Assembly (NCBI GenBank): GCA_025594325.1
Contig: JANHCV010000001.1
Span: 2,232,001 to 2,296,000, forward strand
Direction: 5' to 3'
DNA: 64,000 nt
Source: Blastocladiella emersonii ATCC 22665
Taxonomy: Eukaryota > Fungi > Blastocladiomycota
The position numbers and the translations under genes are program-made. The notes under the pieces are model-generated. The model saw nothing but the letters and a program-made list of their open reading frames with translations. It had not been told where the DNA came from and ran no database searches. Below are positions 1 to 8,153 of this stretch, one piece after another (the first letter of the stretch is position 1; each line of letters begins with the position of its first letter).

Positions 1-1386
1 CCTGGAGCGAGGCGAGGGTGGCGGCGACCGAGTCCTCGGTGTGGACGCAGGCCGTGGCGATGGTGGCGGCGGCGCCGCCCTCGGACGACGAGTCGCCGTT
101 GGCGGCGGCGGCCGTGGCGCTGACCTTGGCGAGGGTCGAGCGGCACTCGCCGAGCTCGGCCGAGTGCTTGGCGGTGAGCACGGCGACCTGGGCCTCGTGC
201 GCCTGGGCGAGCTCCTCGCACGCGTGCAGGTGCTGCGTCGCGAGCGTCTGCTTGAGCTCCTCCATCTCGCGTGCGTGCTCGAGGCGGACGGCCTCGAGGT
301 CGACGGTCACGACGCTGACGACGGTGCCGGTCTCGGAGACCTGGCTGGTCGAGTTGTCGTGCTCGCTGGCCGCGGCCGTGGCCGGGCGCGACGCGTCCTC
401 GTGCTCCTCGCCCGAAACCGAGTTGGCGGCCGAGGCGGAGATGAGCTTCTCCTTGAGATCGTGGTTCTGGATGGTGGTTGCAGAGAGTGCATGGTCGTTA
501 GTAAGTTGTCGGGGATTCGACGTAAGGGAGGGAAGAGGTCCAGATCTGGCGACTGCCGACGCGCCGGCGAGACGCGTCGCCTCAGCTGAGCGGGCCGAAC
601 GGGTGGCGCGGACAAGCGGGAACCCGAGATCAGGGCGATCATCAAGCCTCAGCCCACGTTGCGAGCCAGCGCTTGTTCGCCGCCGCTGCTGCGGAACGCC
701 ACCCAAACCGACCGATCGCGCAACAACGCGACGCGACGGCGCGAGGGACGAGAGGAGTAGGACGAAAGAAGACGACGTACCTCCGTCTGCAGGAGCTGGA
801 GCTGGAGCTTGAGCGACTCCATCTGCTCGAGCAGGTGCTTCTCGGCCTCACGCTTCTCGGCGACCGACGAGGTCACCTTACGCGTGGTGGTAGTCGAGCC
901 GGCACCGGGGGCCGACGAGACCTTGCGCGCGGTCAGCGTCGACGAGCTGGTAGCGCCCGGGATGCGGCGGATCGACGAGGCGGCCGTCGTGGTGGTCGAC
1001 GAGGCGACCGAGCCCGAGGTCGGCTTCTTGGCGAGGCGCGACGCCGACGTGGTGGTCGGGCGGGCGTACGACGGCACGGCCGAGGACGACGACGAGGTCG
1101 TGGTGGTGCGCGTCTTGGCGGGACTCGAGGCGGCCGAGGTGGCGGCCGAGTGCGGCGCCGAAGACGACGTGCGGCGCGCGGCAGCCGACGACGCCGAGGA
1201 CGACGACGACGAGCTGGCGGTGGCGGCGGCCGAGTGGGCGCCTGCGCCCTCCTTGGAGGCGGCCACCGACGTGCGGCGGGCCGACGACGAGCTGGCGGCC
1301 GAGTGGGCGGCAGAGGCGCCCGAGGCGGCGGCCGAGCCCGAGGAAGCCGTCAGGCCGGTCTTGACACGGGGACCGGACGACGACAT
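1..1386 (-). CDS. Hypothetical protein, Ser/Thr-rich N-terminus followed by coiled coil (3' truncated by window edge)
   Basis: ATG at 1386 (MSSSGPRVKTG...). High-GC3 codons down to a GTACGT donor at 780. Coding resumes after a CTAAC branch/CAG acceptor near 465 (NHDLKEKLISAS..., E/L-rich heptads). An intermediate exon cannot be excluded. Confidence 0.55.
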
Positions 1387-3221
1387 GGTGTTGGTGGTGT
1401 TGGTGGTGATAATGACCTTGGTAGAAGGAGTGGAGTAGACTGGGCGGGTGCAAGGCTGCAAATCTTACACGGGGCCAGGTAGGAGGGGAGAAGGTGGAGA
1501 CTAAAGAGTACAGAGAGCTCGGCGAGCAGGGTAATACAGGAGAGACGAGAGGGGGAGGGCGGAGGGGGGATGTTCTACGGTTTTCGTTGAGGACGAAGGA
1601 GGGGAGATGGGTAACTGGTGCTGCTGACGGCGCGAATCAGCAGGCAAAGCCAACAGTGTAGGGGAGACGACGAGACAGATGAGAGGACGAGGGGGGGAGG
1701 GCGGGAGGGGGGTTGCACGGGTGCAGGGGGGTGTTGCTGGGTTGGTAGGCTTGGGTTGCGTGTATAGCTAGCGATGCGCAAAGGAGCAGGAGAGCGGGGG
1801 CCGCTCGCGGGGGGCGCTGGCGCTTTGTAGAGGTCGGGCGGTGGCGAGGCCCAACTCGGGCGGCTGCGTGTGGCTCGGCCGCAACCCTTCATCTCATGCG
1901 AGAGGTGCAAGGCGTGCCCGCGGAAATGGCCTTGTTGACGCATTTACCCTGCCCAGCTGCCATAAATAAGATCCCTCGCGCGCCAGACTCGCGGCCCAAG
2001 CGAGCAACCGGCTGTGAGGATCCATCATCAACATCCAACGTGGTGAGCGAGGGCGAGACGAGCGGGCCGCGGTGGTGGAGGTGGTGGTGCCGCGGCCACG
2101 GCCGCAGCGCGTCGCGATCACCGCCGGCATCAACGAGCGTTGTCGCCACCGCCGCGCGACGCGTCGGAGCTCAGGTGGGCGTGGGCAGCCGGCGGCGCGG
2201 GCGGGGACGCAGCGGTGGGGGGCGCCACGATCTGGCCGCGGAGGCGAGGGCTTGCCGGGAGCTCAAGAACTGCGCCCTGACTCGCAGCTCGCGATCTGCT
2301 AGCGGTGATGGCGCAGCTGCTCGCTGCAACCATCTCTCACCATGGCCAGCATGCGACGCTTCACGATCTTCTCTACCCGTTGGGCCTGCTCGTGCGCCCG
2401 CGCCGCGCGAAGCTGCACCACGGCCATCATCCACCGTGGCCGGCCACACACACTCCCGCCTCATCCTCATCGTGCTCGCGATCTTCACCATGGCCACCAC
2501 GGCCACGATGGCCGTCGACCCTGCTCGCGTCGTGGGCTGCGGTAAATGTCTCGCATTGTGGCGTAGCGCTAAATGAAGCAGATTTGCTCGCTGTCTCGAG
2601 GCACAAGCCACTCGCCGCCCGCCTATTCTTGGCCTCCTTGATGTACGCGTCGTCTCGCGCGTCCGTGCACCTCGCGCGACTCGGAAGCCGAGGTCGCTGG
2701 CCACACTCTTCCGCGACGTTCTCCCGGCCACGGCGGTTGATGGCCACCGGCAGCAATACCGAGCTCACCTCACGCCAGTGGCAATGGGACAGCTGGACGC
2801 GACCAAGATCGTCCTGGAACCTGCGCGGCGAGAGTCTCTGGTGAGGCTCACTTCGTGGCGATCAACAACGAGGTCACAGATTCGGACGACGAGCACCGCG
2901 TTTAACGCGAGGGTGGTGGCGGAGCGCTGGGTGCGTCGCGTGGCTCAGCTCCAGCCCCTGCATGAACGAAATGCGCGTTAAGGTTTGCCTCTGCGCAGCG
3001 GCGGCTGATGATGCCACTCGAGAAAATGCTCAGCCGATCGCTGCTCGCGGCTCAACCTCGGCCGCTGCTGCGGTTTTGCGCACGTTTCGGATCACGCCCG
3101 TGGCGCATCGCGTCGCTGCGCATCAGCCTCGCCATCAGGCTCTCACACTCGTTCCGACCTCACGGGTACCGAGGACGTCATGGCAGTTGCTGGGAGCAGT
3201 CCCTTGGAAGCGGGACACGAG

Positions 3222-3245
3222 TGTAGATGTAGATGTAGATGTAGA
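3222..3245 (+). repeat. (TGTAGA)4 microsatellite; short (GATA)n follows at ~3260-3272
   Basis: Read directly from the sequence. Confidence 0.9.
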
Positions 3246-3319
3246 GCGAAAGAAGACAGAGATAGATAGATAAAGATTCTGCCCGTGCATCACAACAAAT
3301 CAAACAACAAAATTGGAGG

Positions 3320-3553
3320 TTAAGTGCACCGGCCGACAATGCGGCCGAACGAGGGTCACCCGGCCCAGCAGGGCAAGGGCACCTCGCAGCTGGGCTCGCT
3401 GCTACTATGCGAGCCACCGCCCCGCCGCTGACTCCTAAGCACAGCGCGTGCTCGTGGTCTTGACAAAGGAAGCACGGACGTGCGGACACGATGCGTGTCA
3501 CACGCTCCGACCCAGCTGGTGGACGGCGAGGGAAGGAGGAAGGACAGCTTGGA
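3320..3553 (-). ncRNA. Candidate Fanzor omegaRNA scaffold
   Basis: Lies immediately 3' of the Fanzor stop. Contains hairpins GGCTCGC-9nt-GCGAGCC (3393-3415) and CGGCCG-6nt-CGGCCG (3330-3347). Ends at TTAA (3320-3323), where the sequence turns T-rich. Position matches known TnpB/Fanzor omegaRNAs; expression not shown. Confidence 0.45.
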
Positions 3554-5994
3554 CTACTCGACCGTGGGCGTGGTGCGGCGCTTGCGGTGGTAGCGGTGCT
3601 TGGGGCGGGCGGCGGGCAGCGGGTTGCCGTCCGCGTCCTTGGCCTGGTCCTCGAAGACGAGCTGCTTGATGGCAAACGAGAGGATGTTGACGGCCGCGTT
3701 GCGGTCGCGCTGGACGCGGACGCCGCAGCGACGGCACGCGCGCGTCTGGTACACCTTCTTGTTGGTCTTGCCGAGCAGGTTGGTCTTGTCGGCCTTGGCG
3801 GCGGCGGGTTCGGCCATAGCGCACGCGGCGCACCACTTGCTCGAGTAGTTCTCGTCGACGGCGTACACGGTGACCATCTCGACCACAGGGCCCTTGTTGG
3901 CCGCCGAGATCATGCCGAAGCCCGAGCAGTTGCGGCCAATGAGCACGACGTGGCCGCGCAGCGCGCGGGCGAGGTCGGCCCAGTACGCCTTGCGGCGGCC
4001 CTCGTTGGTGAACTTGGTGCTGCACACGCCGTGGCTGCAGCTCTCCTCGACCTTGGCCTCCATGTACTCGGTGGCGACACGAGCGACCGCGCGGTGGTCG
4101 CCGGCAACGCACGAGTGCGCTGCATCGCCTGGTACGAGGCCCGCCTTGGCGCGCGACGCCTTGCGCTGCTCGCGGGCCTGGTCGGTGCCGACGTGGTGGT
4201 GGAACTCGCGACTCGACAGCGACCGGAACAGCGGCCGAGTCAGGACGACGCGCGAGACCGCCGACCGAATGTACGCCTTGATCACCTCGGACCACGGGCC
4301 GTCGCCACCCTGCGCCGCCAAGTACGCGAGGTACTGGAGCCGCCGGAACAGGCGCGCGAGCTCGAACGGCACGACGAAGCCGGTGAGAAAGTCGCGCACG
4401 CCGGCGTCAATGACAAACATGCACTGGCCGTAGCGGACGACAATCTTCTTCTTGTGCGACTCGACCTTGTCGCGACCGCCGGGGATCGGGACCTGGACCG
4501 AGCCATGGGGCGCGAGCTTGTCGGCCTCGGCGAGCACCTGGTCGAGCGTGAGGCTGCCTGCGCCGTCGACCGAGACGCCCGCGAACGGCTTGTGGAACTT
4601 GCCCGTGAAGCGACGCCCTTGACGCCCGCCCGTCGTGGCCGTGGTGGTGGTCTTGGTCCCGGCCTTCTTCTTGCCGGCAGCCTTCTTGACCGTGTTGCCG
4701 CCGGCGCCCTCCTCATCCTCCTCCTCGTCACCGCCGTCGCCGACCGTGTCCGCCCTTGGCCGGATGCCGCCTTTGTACAGGTACACGCGGACGACATGGC
4801 CGTCGGTCGAGATGCGGCCCTGGAACTGGTTGATGAGCGAGCCGCCGGGGCCGTCGCGCCGCAGGATGCGCGGGTCGAGGAAGCCGTCGTACAGGTCGAG
4901 CAGCGCCGTCCAGTAGGCGAGGTCGGAGCGGGCGCGCTCGAGGTCGGACGAACCCTTGGGCGCGACAGGTACGCCGTTGATCCTCCTGGCGAGCGTCTGG
5001 CCGTTGGAGTTGATGACCTCGGCACCGAGCACGTCGGACAGCCCCTCGAGGTCGAATGAGAAGAAGCGGTGCGACAGGTCGAGTTGAGGAACAGGACGAG
5101 GTGGATGGCGGGCGCGCCAGGTAGCCGGCTTGGAAATCGGCCTCGGCGTACTTCTTGAGGAGCGACAGGACCAGGGCGTGGCCCGACTTCTTGACGGCCG
5201 TCGCGTACTCGCGCGATGATCTGCTGCGTCAGCGTGACGGCCGGGTCGTCGAGGCACAGTGCCAGGTAGTGCGGGATCAGTAGCTTGACCTCGTTCGTCA
5301 GCCACGTCATGCGCTTGACGGCGCACTGGATCTTGCGCACGGCCTGGGCGCGGACGTGAGGAACAAAGAAGCTGCCCAGTCGGCGCGAGAAGGTGACGAA
5401 GCGGCCCGTGCCCGAGCAGCCGTACTTGGCGGGGTCGGGACCGATGACGGTCGGCCGTGGTGGTGGTGGTGGTCGACCTTGCCGACGAGGTGGTGGTGGT
5501 GGTGGCGGTGGGGATGACGAGGCCGAGGATGACGAGGGTGGAGGTGAAGGTGAAGGTGAAGCGCGTCGTGGTCGCTTCCTCGGTGGTGCGGCGAGAGGAG
5601 CACGGCGGGGGACCTTGGGGTCGTGGTCGACGACGTCGTCGGGCTCGGGGCTCGGGTCGAGCGGGGCCTCATGGCGGCCGACCGAGCTTGGCCTTGGTGG
5701 GCCGAAGGCGCCGACGACAGCAGGACGCGCGGCCGAGCGAGCACGAGGGCGACGGGTAGGCGAGCGACCGCGCGGCGCGCCGTCGGACCCGGACGCGGGT
5801 GCGGCAGCGCAACGGCCACGAGTACCACCACCGCCAACCTGGCCCGCCGACGTGGGCGGCGATGAGTCGGACGAGGAAGATGGCGACGAGTCGGTCGAGG
5901 AGGACGGCGACCTGGTGTACGTCTCCATCAGGGACTCGACCAGCCGGTCGATGTGGAACCCGTCGAGCGAGAGCCACGTCTGCTTGATGAACCG
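3554..5994 (-). CDS. Fanzor1-like RuvC RNA-guided endonuclease (TnpB/Cas12-related); probably spliced, may extend to an upstream exon at 6388-6107
   Basis: Motifs in order: helical IQCAVKRMTWLTNEVKLLIPHYLALCL; PVPQLDLSHRFFSFD; ISTDG; RuvC-I VIDAGVRDFLTG (D 4406-4408); VVLIG; RuvC-II VDENYSSKWC (E 3851-3853); CxxC...CxxC zinc finger; RuvC-III RDRNAAVNI (D 3704-3706). A frame break at 5208-5129 can be bridged by an 80-nt GT..AG intron. Confidence 0.85.
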
Positions 5995-6845
5995 CTACGG
6001 GCGGGCGCGAGATGGGCGGGGTCAGTTCCTGCGTCGCTATACGTGGCGGAGACGAGATGAGGAGGATAGTACCTTTCGTCGTGGTTGTCGCTTGCCAAGG
6101 GCTCACGTCGAGCAACAGCCAGACGCAGCTTTTGGTACGTTGCGCAAGCTCTCTCCGTCGTCGTCCAACTTGACCAAGTTTCGGGTACAACCGCGAGCGA
6201 CGCGACCTCGGCCGGCGCGTCACGGCCATGACGCGACGGTTCGGCCTCCTCCACGTCTTCTTTACCTCGACGCCGAACCTGAACGAATCACTGGCGCTCA
6301 ACATCTGGTGCGGCGGCGACCCAGAAGACCTCGTGGCGTGTCCTGCACACGGGGGCGACCAGCAGTACCGCCACGCGGGAGCGCGCATGATCGCCGCCGC
6401 CGCGTTCAAACTGTCGCCCGAGAAGCTGCCAGCCGCGATCGACCTTCACTAAGGTTTATGGCCGTCGCCGTCCGCGCCTCCATCCCCATAGTCGCGCTCG
6501 AGTCGCGCAAACTGCCAAAGCCGGGCGACGTGTCGGTTCCTCAAGTAGCTGATCCGCGACGGAGATCAAGATGCGTCCTCCAAAGTCACGCGCGACTCCC
6601 TGCAGCTCATTAAGCAGTCATGCGTTGGTAAGAAGCGCGTGAAGCGAGGGGCCGAGCTGCTCGCGTCGGGGTCGCGAGGGTCACCTGCGACTGACCCCAC
6701 GTGTGGACGACGATCGCGCGCGGGCGGCGATCCGGCGAGCGAGTCACCACCACCCGCTCCCGCCTTCGCCGCCGCTCCCTCTTGCAAGCACGATTATCTC
6801 TCCGTGCAACGTCACCCACTCCACGTAACTCAACGCATCGACACC

Positions 6846-8153
6846 ATGAGCACCATTGGCGCCTCGCTTGCGCAGATCGCGTCGCCGGCGGTCAAGGACA
6901 AGGCGGCGGCGTACCGCGAGCTGACTGCGACGGTGTTTGCCGGCGTGGGCACGAACCCGGCCGCCTTCCTCGCGAACCTCAACGACCTCCTGGCGGCGCT
7001 GCTGCTCGAGTCGACGGGTCTCGTCGTGGCGCGCCCCGCGGTCGCCGACATCATGGAGCGCGCGACGGGGCTGCCCGTCACGGTGCCCGAGGAGACGCGC
7101 CACGGCGTGTTTACGGCGCTGATTGCGCACCTGGAGCCGCGCGCCGTGTCGTTCGAGGAGCAGGTCTCGGTCGCCCGCGAGAAGCTTGCCGAGATCCAGG
7201 AGGCCAACGAGGACTGGTCCGACGCCGCGCGCACGCTCATGGGGATCAAGCTCGAGTCGGGCCACCGGTACGCGCGCTTGGCGTGGTTGCATTGCCCCCG
7301 AACCCGCGACTGACCTCGCACCCGTGTACCCCGCCGCCGTAGCGTCGTGAGCGACGAGTACAAGCTCAAGATCTACCTGCACATTGTGCGCCTGCTGCTC
7401 GAGGACGACGACACGGTGACGGCCGACACGATGCTGAAGCGCGCGGGCACGCTGATTGGGCCCGAGCACGACCCGGTGCTGCAGCTGACGTACAAGATGT
7501 GCCACGCGCGGATCCTCGACTCGCAGCGGCGGTTTATCGAGGCGTGCGCCAAGTACGTCGAGCTGTCGTACGCGGCGCAGATCCACCCGGACGAGAAGAA
7601 CCAGCTGCTCGAGAAGGCCGTGACGTGCGCGGTGCTCGCGGGCGCCGGTCCGCAGCGCAGTCGCATGCTCGCGTCGCTGTACAAGGACGAGCGCGTGCAG
7701 AAGCTGCCGCACGTGTACTGGAGCGTGCTGGAGAAGATGCACCTGGGCCGCATCCTGCGCATCCACGAGGTGACCGATTTCGTCAAGCTGCTGAGCGGGC
7801 ACCACCTCGCCAAGCTCGCCGACGGCGCCACGGTGCTCGACCGCGCCGTGATCCAGCACAACCTGCTGTCGGCGAGTCTCATCTACGCCAACATCTCGTT
7901 TGCCGAGCTCGGCCGCCTGCTCGGCATCACGGCGGCCGAGGCCGAGCGCACCGCGGCGCGCATGATCGGCGAGCTGCGCCTGCAGGGCCGCGTCGACCAG
8001 ATTGACCAGGTCGTCTACTTCCAGACGTCGGGCGTCATGGCGTCGTGGGACGCGCGCGTCGCCGCCATGTGCACGCGCATCGACGACCTCGCGGGCGCCC
8101 TCACGGCGCAGGCCGCGGTGACCAGCGACGAGGCGCCCATGCAGCTCGCCTAG
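6846..8153 (+). CDS. CSN4: COP9 signalosome subunit 4 (PCI domain)
   Basis: [83 protein letters not shown]. Intron 7268-7342 keeps the frame. Confidence 0.93.

Follow-up and report, generated by a model that had tools for sequence, protein, structure and literature searches.

A divergent, probably decaying Fanzor1-type gene and its 5'-truncated relatives in Blastocladiella emersonii

Fanzors are the eukaryotic homologues of TnpB, and they are RNA-guided nucleases under development as compact genome editors. Proteins of the TnpB/Cas12 superfamily share a RuvC (RNase H-like) fold that is split by a C4 zinc ribbon, the TNB domain. Fanzor1 genes are carried by eukaryotic transposons of several kinds (Mariner, Helitron, Sola, IS4-like and MuDR) that have recognisable ends or a transposase. 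Described here is a Fanzor1-type gene of the fungus Blastocladiella emersonii ATCC 22665 (Blastocladiomycota), which occupies positions 5994-3554 of a 64,000-nucleotide stretch of assembly GCA_025594325.1. This whole stretch is called the window; coordinates refer to it unless another locus is named, and features lie on the minus strand unless stated otherwise. The gene is the only full-length copy seen of one B. emersonii family, and it is probably decaying, most likely as a pseudogene or as the source of a crippled protein.

The closest described protein in structure is SpuFz of the Spizellomyces SPu-1 elements (PDB 8GKH, 9CEU-9CEZ). Like the Blastocladiella gene product, it is a fungal Fanzor with a long N-terminal extension and a candidate omegaRNA region 3' of its gene, and the two folds match at Z 12.4-13.2 over about 220 residues of RuvC and zinc ribbon. 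However, the sequences are only 15-17% identical, and a sequence profile of the Blastocladiella family reaches SpuFz at an E value of 0.27 only. SPu-1 has terminal inverted repeats (TIRs) 33 bp in length, TA target duplications and numerous full-length copies (Bao & Jurka 2013, PMC3627910). In contrast, the Blastocladiella family has no TIRs and one full-length copy, and its remaining copies are truncated at their 5' ends. Neither TIRs nor a transposase open reading frame (ORF) were found, yet the family is multi-copy and has a defined 3' end.

In this respect it mirrors the Chlamydomonas families CRe-1, CRe-2 and CRe-3, which contain Fanzor1 only, lack a transposase of their own and are often 5'-truncated with intact 3' ends (PMC3627910). 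Direct repeats of variable length (7-19 bp) often flank truncated CRe copies; they are found in 10-70% of copies in the CRe families, and the elements have been interpreted as non-autonomous Helitron2 transposons copied from the 3' end (PMC3627910). All seven Blastocladiella paralogs examined lack part of the 5' region and stop at one common 3' end, but only one of the seven has such a flanking repeat, of 14 bp. A full-length copy accompanied by truncated copies that share their last 3' nucleotide bears on how Fanzors without a transposase move.

Closer in taxonomy is Allomyces macrogynus, another member of the Blastocladiomycota, for which Table 1 of Bao & Jurka 2013 (PMC3627910) lists the Fanzor1 families AMa, so Fanzor1 was already on record for this phylum in 2013. 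No Allomyces protein is among the phmmer matches of the window gene at E <= 1e-3. Judged by this absence, the Blastocladiella clade would be far in sequence from the Allomyces Fanzor1 proteins.

Family membership and the rearranged active site

The gene belongs to the TnpB/Cas12 superfamily. Pfam family PF07282 (Cas12f1-like TNB) matches its product at E 7e-9, with a score of 36.2 bits (cut-off 26.3), and also exceeds the cut-off in 12 of 12 relatives scanned. A profile made solely from sister families found in B. emersonii matches the window ORF at E 3.5e-92, which, as a sequence comparison, puts the family match far above chance. Against solved structures, the family profile finds LaTranC, ISDra2 TnpB and Cas12f at E 2.5e-5 to 4e-3. 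These matches bear out the kind of gene proposed in the first-pass annotation, made by a reader who saw only the DNA letters, which had read it as a TnpB/Fanzor-type RuvC nuclease with a zinc ribbon from an early-diverging fungus and had named profile searches among the checks. A single-sequence phmmer search of the solved structures gave a weak LaTranC match (E 0.31) and did not find SpuFz. A profile search of a word-indexed database with alignment A2, which comprises the window family and ten sister-family proteins, was dominated by low-complexity words and returned nothing beyond the same paralogs.

An exhaustive phmmer search of 1.84 billion representative proteins gave 16 matches at E <= 1e-3. 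Fifteen are B. emersonii proteins, those outside the gene's own family being 31-46% identical to it; the one remaining match comes from an orchid and bears a serine racemase annotation. At least ten Fanzor-type families are present in the B. emersonii genome (P0012-P0020 and P0022-P0024), with a mutual identity of 22-46%, and no comparable phmmer match to them was found in other organisms among the same representatives. Because its nearest relatives are all B. emersonii proteins, the family is best placed within a divergent, lineage-specific Fanzor radiation; that the protein is divergent had been suspected at first reading. Such a private radiation of very divergent families might supply new enzymes and omegaRNAs.

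In the AlphaFold2 (AF2) model of the window product, the RuvC half is confident, with a predicted local distance difference test score (pLDDT) of 75-90, and the N-terminal half is poor. The top Foldseek match of this model is the Fanzor1 protein SpuFz (E 2.5e-5). VIA-align likewise ranks SpuFz first (Z 12.4), followed by PpFz (10.2), CasPhi (9.9), and Fanzor2 and TnpB (both 9.6). The better model available for paralog P0010 leaves the ranking unchanged, with SpuFz at Z 13.2, and fold matches to Fanzor, TnpB and Cas12 chains span Z 8-13. Both models agree with the Fanzor1-like fold that had been expected from the sequence. The gene is predicted to be of the Fanzor1 type on the basis of structure, architecture and host rather than clade placement.

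The motifs on which the first-pass annotation relied are real, and all of them lie in a single frame, within the long ORF 5326-3554. The RuvC-I block VIDAGVRDFLTG (4414-4379) holds the first catalytic aspartate in the motif VIDAG (4408-4406), a near-invariant column in A2. At the canonical RuvC-II glutamate site there is a glycine (VVLIG, 3937-3935), as found with A2 and by profile comparison. The rearranged glutamate follows in VDENYSSKWC (3853-3851), which is part of a block that also contains the first zinc-binding pair (VDENYSSKWCAAC, 3859-3821), and it is invariant in alignments A2 and A3. The second zinc-binding pair and the RuvC-III aspartate share the block CRRCGVRVQRDRNAAVNI (3736-3683). 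This aspartate, in QRDRNAA (3706-3704) after the CxxC...CxxC zinc ribbon (3859-3683), is invariant in A2 and is covered by PF07282. The sister-family alignment shows no variation at the E of V-x-E-N-[YF]-S-S-K, at any of the four cysteines, or at the D and N of R-D-x-N-A-A. Over 12-15 aligned sequences, the E and the last D of the D...E...D set are invariant and the first D is near-invariant, and the window copy keeps the triad intact, as had been claimed.

Fanzors and TnpB2 proteins are described as having glycine or proline in place of the canonical RuvC-II glutamate and an alternative conserved glutamate further on (Jiang 2023, PMC10530073). The Blastocladiella proteins have the same arrangement, with glycine at the canonical site and an invariant glutamate just before the zinc ribbon, in keeping with the position assigned to this residue at the outset. 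The motif that defines Fanzors, D-X(125,275)-[TS]-[TS]-X-X-[C4 zinc finger]-X(5,50)-RD (Bao & Jurka 2013, PMC3627910), is also present. In the numbering of P0001:185-788, D321 is separated from SSKW-C513 by 187 residues, and CxxC...CxxC is followed by RD starting five residues past the last cysteine. The gene itself resides in a eukaryotic genome, on a nuclear contig.

One further trait had been put forward as distinctive, an acidic/lysine-rich insertion before RuvC-I. Its acidic part is DEEEDEE (4729-4709) and its lysine-rich part KKAAGKKKAG (4687-4658). The alignment and the AF2 model indicate a variable, disordered linker, and sister families have one too, so that the insertion does not set this protein apart.

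Frame breaks and a deletion in the full-length copy

The interval 3554-5994 had been presented as one gene. The gene is real and is an exact database match to H9P43_000824 (KAI9189391.1), publicly annotated as a hypothetical protein of 788 aa, but it is not one open frame and requires either two frame changes or an 80-nt intron. It can be read only across three frames, with breaks at about 5213 and 5105. The N-terminal segment occupies the first frame (5209-5994), a coding-like stretch EYATAVKKSGHALVLSLLKKYAEADFQAGYLARPP the second (5106-5210), and the remainder the main frame (3554-5107). Consequently, the N-terminal helical block noted at first reading is present in the frame 5994-5209, which differs from that of the catalytic motifs. 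The public model bridges the gap with an intron at 5129-5208 (GTACGC...CCAAG) and has an additional short 5' exon further upstream of 5994.

This 80-nt segment would more probably be coding sequence caught between two frameshifts, a reading that we consider quite likely. A third frame is open over its full length and encodes a helix-like peptide. The second-frame stretch is collinear with sister family P0014: AEADFQAGYL aligns with LAERDFENG at the right position relative to the next conserved block. This pairwise local alignment has a score of 34, with a shuffle p of 0.002 before correction for seven comparisons. A sister-family profile did not detect the second-frame stretch, which was found only by the pairwise alignment to P0014. 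In the truncated copy L004, homology begins inside the 'intron', and the sequence AEADHQAGQLA (AEADxQAGxLA in both copies) runs directly into the downstream frame; compared with L004, the window has a net loss of 2 nt near 5105. Contigs derived from the reads of three runs (X1-X3) have no differences and no gaps over 4951-5447 (4922-5299 for X3), which excludes consensus error as the source of the frame breaks.

The other lesion is an in-frame 24-bp deletion that, in the assembly, is private to the window copy. Comparison with paralogs and sister families places its junction at 3874/3875. The deletion removes KELRSRGV, seven residues ahead of the catalytic glutamate, and lies between GTCA microhomologies. 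The missing segment is kept by all eight paralogous proteins that read across this point and by all ten sister-family proteins, in which it has the conserved pattern PV-x-EM-xxx-LR-xx-GV. In the model of P0010 the segment belongs to a 10-residue helix between two RuvC strands (pLDDT 65-89), and the corresponding helix in the window model has only five residues (pLDDT 34-41). As a result of the deletion, the distance from the glycine to the glutamate is only 28 residues in the window copy, compared with 36 in its paralogs and 'approximately 45' in PMC10530073. The short linker before the glutamate had been taken as the mark of an uncharacterised clade. Because the deletion is private to this copy, it is no such mark.

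With two N-terminal frame breaks and the apparent loss of a RuvC helix, the window copy is most likely a pseudogene or encodes a crippled protein. It would have retained its three catalytic residues while losing the integrity of its N-terminal frame and the helix before the glutamate. The gene is a divergent addition to the Fanzors, which were already known in fungi, and the window copy is probably inactive. The proposal of an active programmable nuclease is not supported for this copy: being frame-broken and apparently without a conserved RuvC helix, it is unsuited for expression. Intact-looking sister proteins would be better candidates, for example P0012, which has 639 aa, is encoded by a single ORF and appears intact.

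Several observations weigh against a decayed copy, and some of them would be explained if the gene functions as annotated, with a real intron, a tolerated 8-residue deletion and an active or host-retained (domesticated) nuclease as its product. This alternative is unlikely. The 80-nt segment has GT...AG boundaries, the same GTACGC donor that is inferred for the intron of the neighbouring CSN4 gene, and a typical length. These likenesses leave a real intron as a minority view, somewhat less remote than function of the whole gene; set against them, one frame of the segment is open throughout, helix-like, collinear with P0014 and joined in frame to the downstream sequence in L004, and no branch site of the CTRAY type is visible in it. 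The deletion is itself in frame and leaves a connector of 21 residues, the catalytic D/E/D residues and the four cysteines are intact, and, as far as sequence alone can tell, the window protein might retain residual activity. However, the deleted helix is retained in all other copies and families examined and is confidently modelled in the paralog. Substitutions private to the window copy lean towards synonymous changes (14 synonymous, 12 non-synonymous; codon positions 9/2/15). This ratio suggests that the lineage may have been under purifying selection until fairly recently, so that the decay is probably recent. Finally, no other full-length copy was seen and the gene lies in a gene-dense host region, but the copy survey drew on annotated paralogs only, and other parts of the genome could harbour a full-length copy that has diverged and lacks annotation.

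The deletion would be an artefact, perhaps along with further differences private to this copy in 3554-4951, if the long-read consensus had gone wrong in a repeat of about ten copies, leaving the copy less damaged than it appears. At 99% identity, none of the read-derived contigs bridges 3874/3875 or spans 3880-3975, and at the private positions 3674, 3713, 4079 and 4282 all aligned contigs show the paralog letter. Such contigs lose rare variants, however, and their gap at the deletion neither confirms nor refutes it. Moreover, a single-copy unitig of run X2 carries the letters of the window copy at 3809 and 3818, and GTCA microhomologies are found at the deletion as they are in real slippage or end-joining. 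Consensus error is thus improbable, and since the frame breaks are confirmed in unique sequence, the window copy would be broken even in that case. More improbable still is that the gene represents another TnpB-type lineage, either a giant-virus-derived, Fanzor2-like one or a recent acquisition of a bacterial TnpB. The best solved matches of the family profile are indeed LaTranC and ISDra2 TnpB (E 2.5e-5 and 2e-4) rather than SpuFz, and the feature-based look-alikes from the ESM Atlas include clusters from Nucleocytoviricota. Yet the top cluster of these look-alikes is from Mucoromycota, and the Fanzor1 proteins SpuFz and PpFz outrank Fanzor2 and TnpB by structure in both models. The protein is also long, with helical insertions and a disordered N terminus bearing a nuclear localisation signal (NLS), and it has at least ten divergent counterpart families of host-like GC content in the same nuclear genome.

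Truncated copies and the 3' module

The family includes seven paralogous loci, L001-L007, which match the window at 93-95% identity and one another at 89-97%. All of them share a 3' end 256-260 nt past the stop codon, at about 3295-3298 (...TTTGTTGTTTGATT GTAA). Their 5' starts are scattered, at 5148, 4951, 4907, 4830, 4725, 4633 and 4554 in window coordinates. More annotated fragments of the family are P0008, P0011 and P0025. The depth of read-derived contigs climbs several-fold toward the 3' end, and 4951-6400 is represented by single-copy contigs; a near-identical duplicate of the N-terminal third was not seen. At 3845-3874, single-copy contigs from runs X1-X3 share 30 nt with the window and then pass into unrelated DNA at the deletion breakpoint, which suggests a further copy truncated at the same GTCA site.

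The conserved stretch between the stop codon and the common 3' end is a non-coding module of about 256-260 nt (3294-3553) that ends in ...TTTGTTGTTTGATT(GTAA) and fits a candidate omegaRNA scaffold or right end. Two versions exist, type A in the window and five loci and type B in L003 and L006. Their identity is 97-98% up to the stop codon, 52% over the next ~170 nt and 73% over the last ~95 nt. The drop falls exactly at the stop codon (window 3294-3553; L003:8154-8408; L006). To judge from these identities, the two versions look like the outcome of a cassette exchange in the candidate omegaRNA region; if this is true, Fanzors are able to swap omegaRNA cassettes. Conservation extends to the terminal hairpins, where one or two compensatory changes occur, but the folding z-scores of the module are weak (-0.9 and -2.3), and an Rfam scan of it gave no match. 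An apparently strong covariation in one hairpin (columns 137-164 of alignment A1) was discounted because the two 3' types are just 52% identical there and the alignment may pair unrelated hairpins. The 3' ends of sister families L008 and L009 have no nucleotide similarity to those of the window family.

Taken together with the active site, the module suggests how the system may have worked. The ancestral, intact protein would have bound an omegaRNA whose source was the conserved ~260 nt past the stop codon. It would have cut DNA by a single RuvC site formed by the aspartate of VIDAG, the rearranged glutamate of VDEN and the aspartate of RDRN, with support from the C4 zinc ribbon. The family, having no transposase of its own, would have spread by a 3'-anchored process whose products would be at least seven copies that share a 3' terminus but differ in their 5' truncations.

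Only chance-level pairs were found in a search for terminal or asymmetric inverted repeats over 2800-7000. Target-site duplications are absent in six of the seven copies; the exception is L007, which is flanked by the 14-bp direct repeat ACGCACCGCTGCTG (6033-6046 and 7336-7349 of that locus). None of the seven has a poly(A) tail. Classic retroposition of the long interspersed nuclear element (LINE) type is not supported, because duplications are absent in six of the seven copies, and it was rejected on this and on the missing tails. Guide-directed homing of truncated copies into sites similar to the flank was also rejected, since a break at the end of a target distal to the target-adjacent motif (TAM) offers no 3' end to prime copying into the element. 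Non-autonomous Helitron2 elements have a 3' hairpin no more than 20-30 nt from the end, asymmetric terminal inverted repeats, a 5' T and a T-rich target (PMC3627910). In the Blastocladiella family, neither a hairpin lying 30 nt or less from the 3' end, a CTRR end, a partner for an asymmetric inverted repeat nor a T-rich target was found; the 5' end is undefined, and the sole clear hairpin stops about 45-50 nt from the end.

The leading guess, close to evenly balanced but falling slightly short of that, is that the family was mobilised in trans and anchored at its 3' end. A fuller scenario is distinctly doubtful, namely that the window copy is a master locus from which the family spread by 3'-primed copy-out, accompanied by swapping of omegaRNA cassettes. 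Candidate routes for copy-out are one-ended rolling-circle replication by a trans-acting Helitron and reverse transcription of the Fanzor mRNA or omegaRNA. Either might carry along the omegaRNA module together with more or less of the gene. As a separate observation, the 8-12 nt past the shared GTAA end (about 3280-3297 in the window) are similar between otherwise unrelated loci among L001-L007, with ATATGCAT occurring twice, besides ATACGCAC and GTATGCGG. This similarity could reflect the true end of the element, a target preference or a short 3' transduction.

Domain order and chromosomal setting

The first frame opens with a disordered part rich in serine, proline and arginine, which contains the NLS-like basic motif PPRKRPRRA (5586-5560). 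It then enters the helical domain, whose start (RFVTFSRRLG ... TLTQQIIAR) aligns with sister family P0012 in A2. The main frame continues with a WED-like block (TDG/KGGIRP), the linker, RuvC-I, a helical insertion, RuvC-II, the zinc ribbon, RuvC-III and the stop codon. The ISTDG motif is read at 4813-4799 in ORF 5326-3554.

The locus is nuclear chromosomal DNA, as judged by its 5.14-Mb contig and a nearby host gene of the CSN4/PSMD12 type with a PCI domain. This gene begins about 850 bp upstream of the Fanzor gene on the opposite strand, which leaves no space for a transposase on that side, and no transposase ORF was found between it and the 3' end of the element. An intron of the CSN4/PCI gene, read from the sequence at 7268-7341 on the plus strand, has the donor GTACGC and the branch site CTGAC, and GTACGC appears to be a working donor in B. 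emersonii. Downstream of the element, window positions 1-3290 contain long ORFs on both strands without a Pfam match, which are probably chance ORFs given that the DNA has 64-72% GC.

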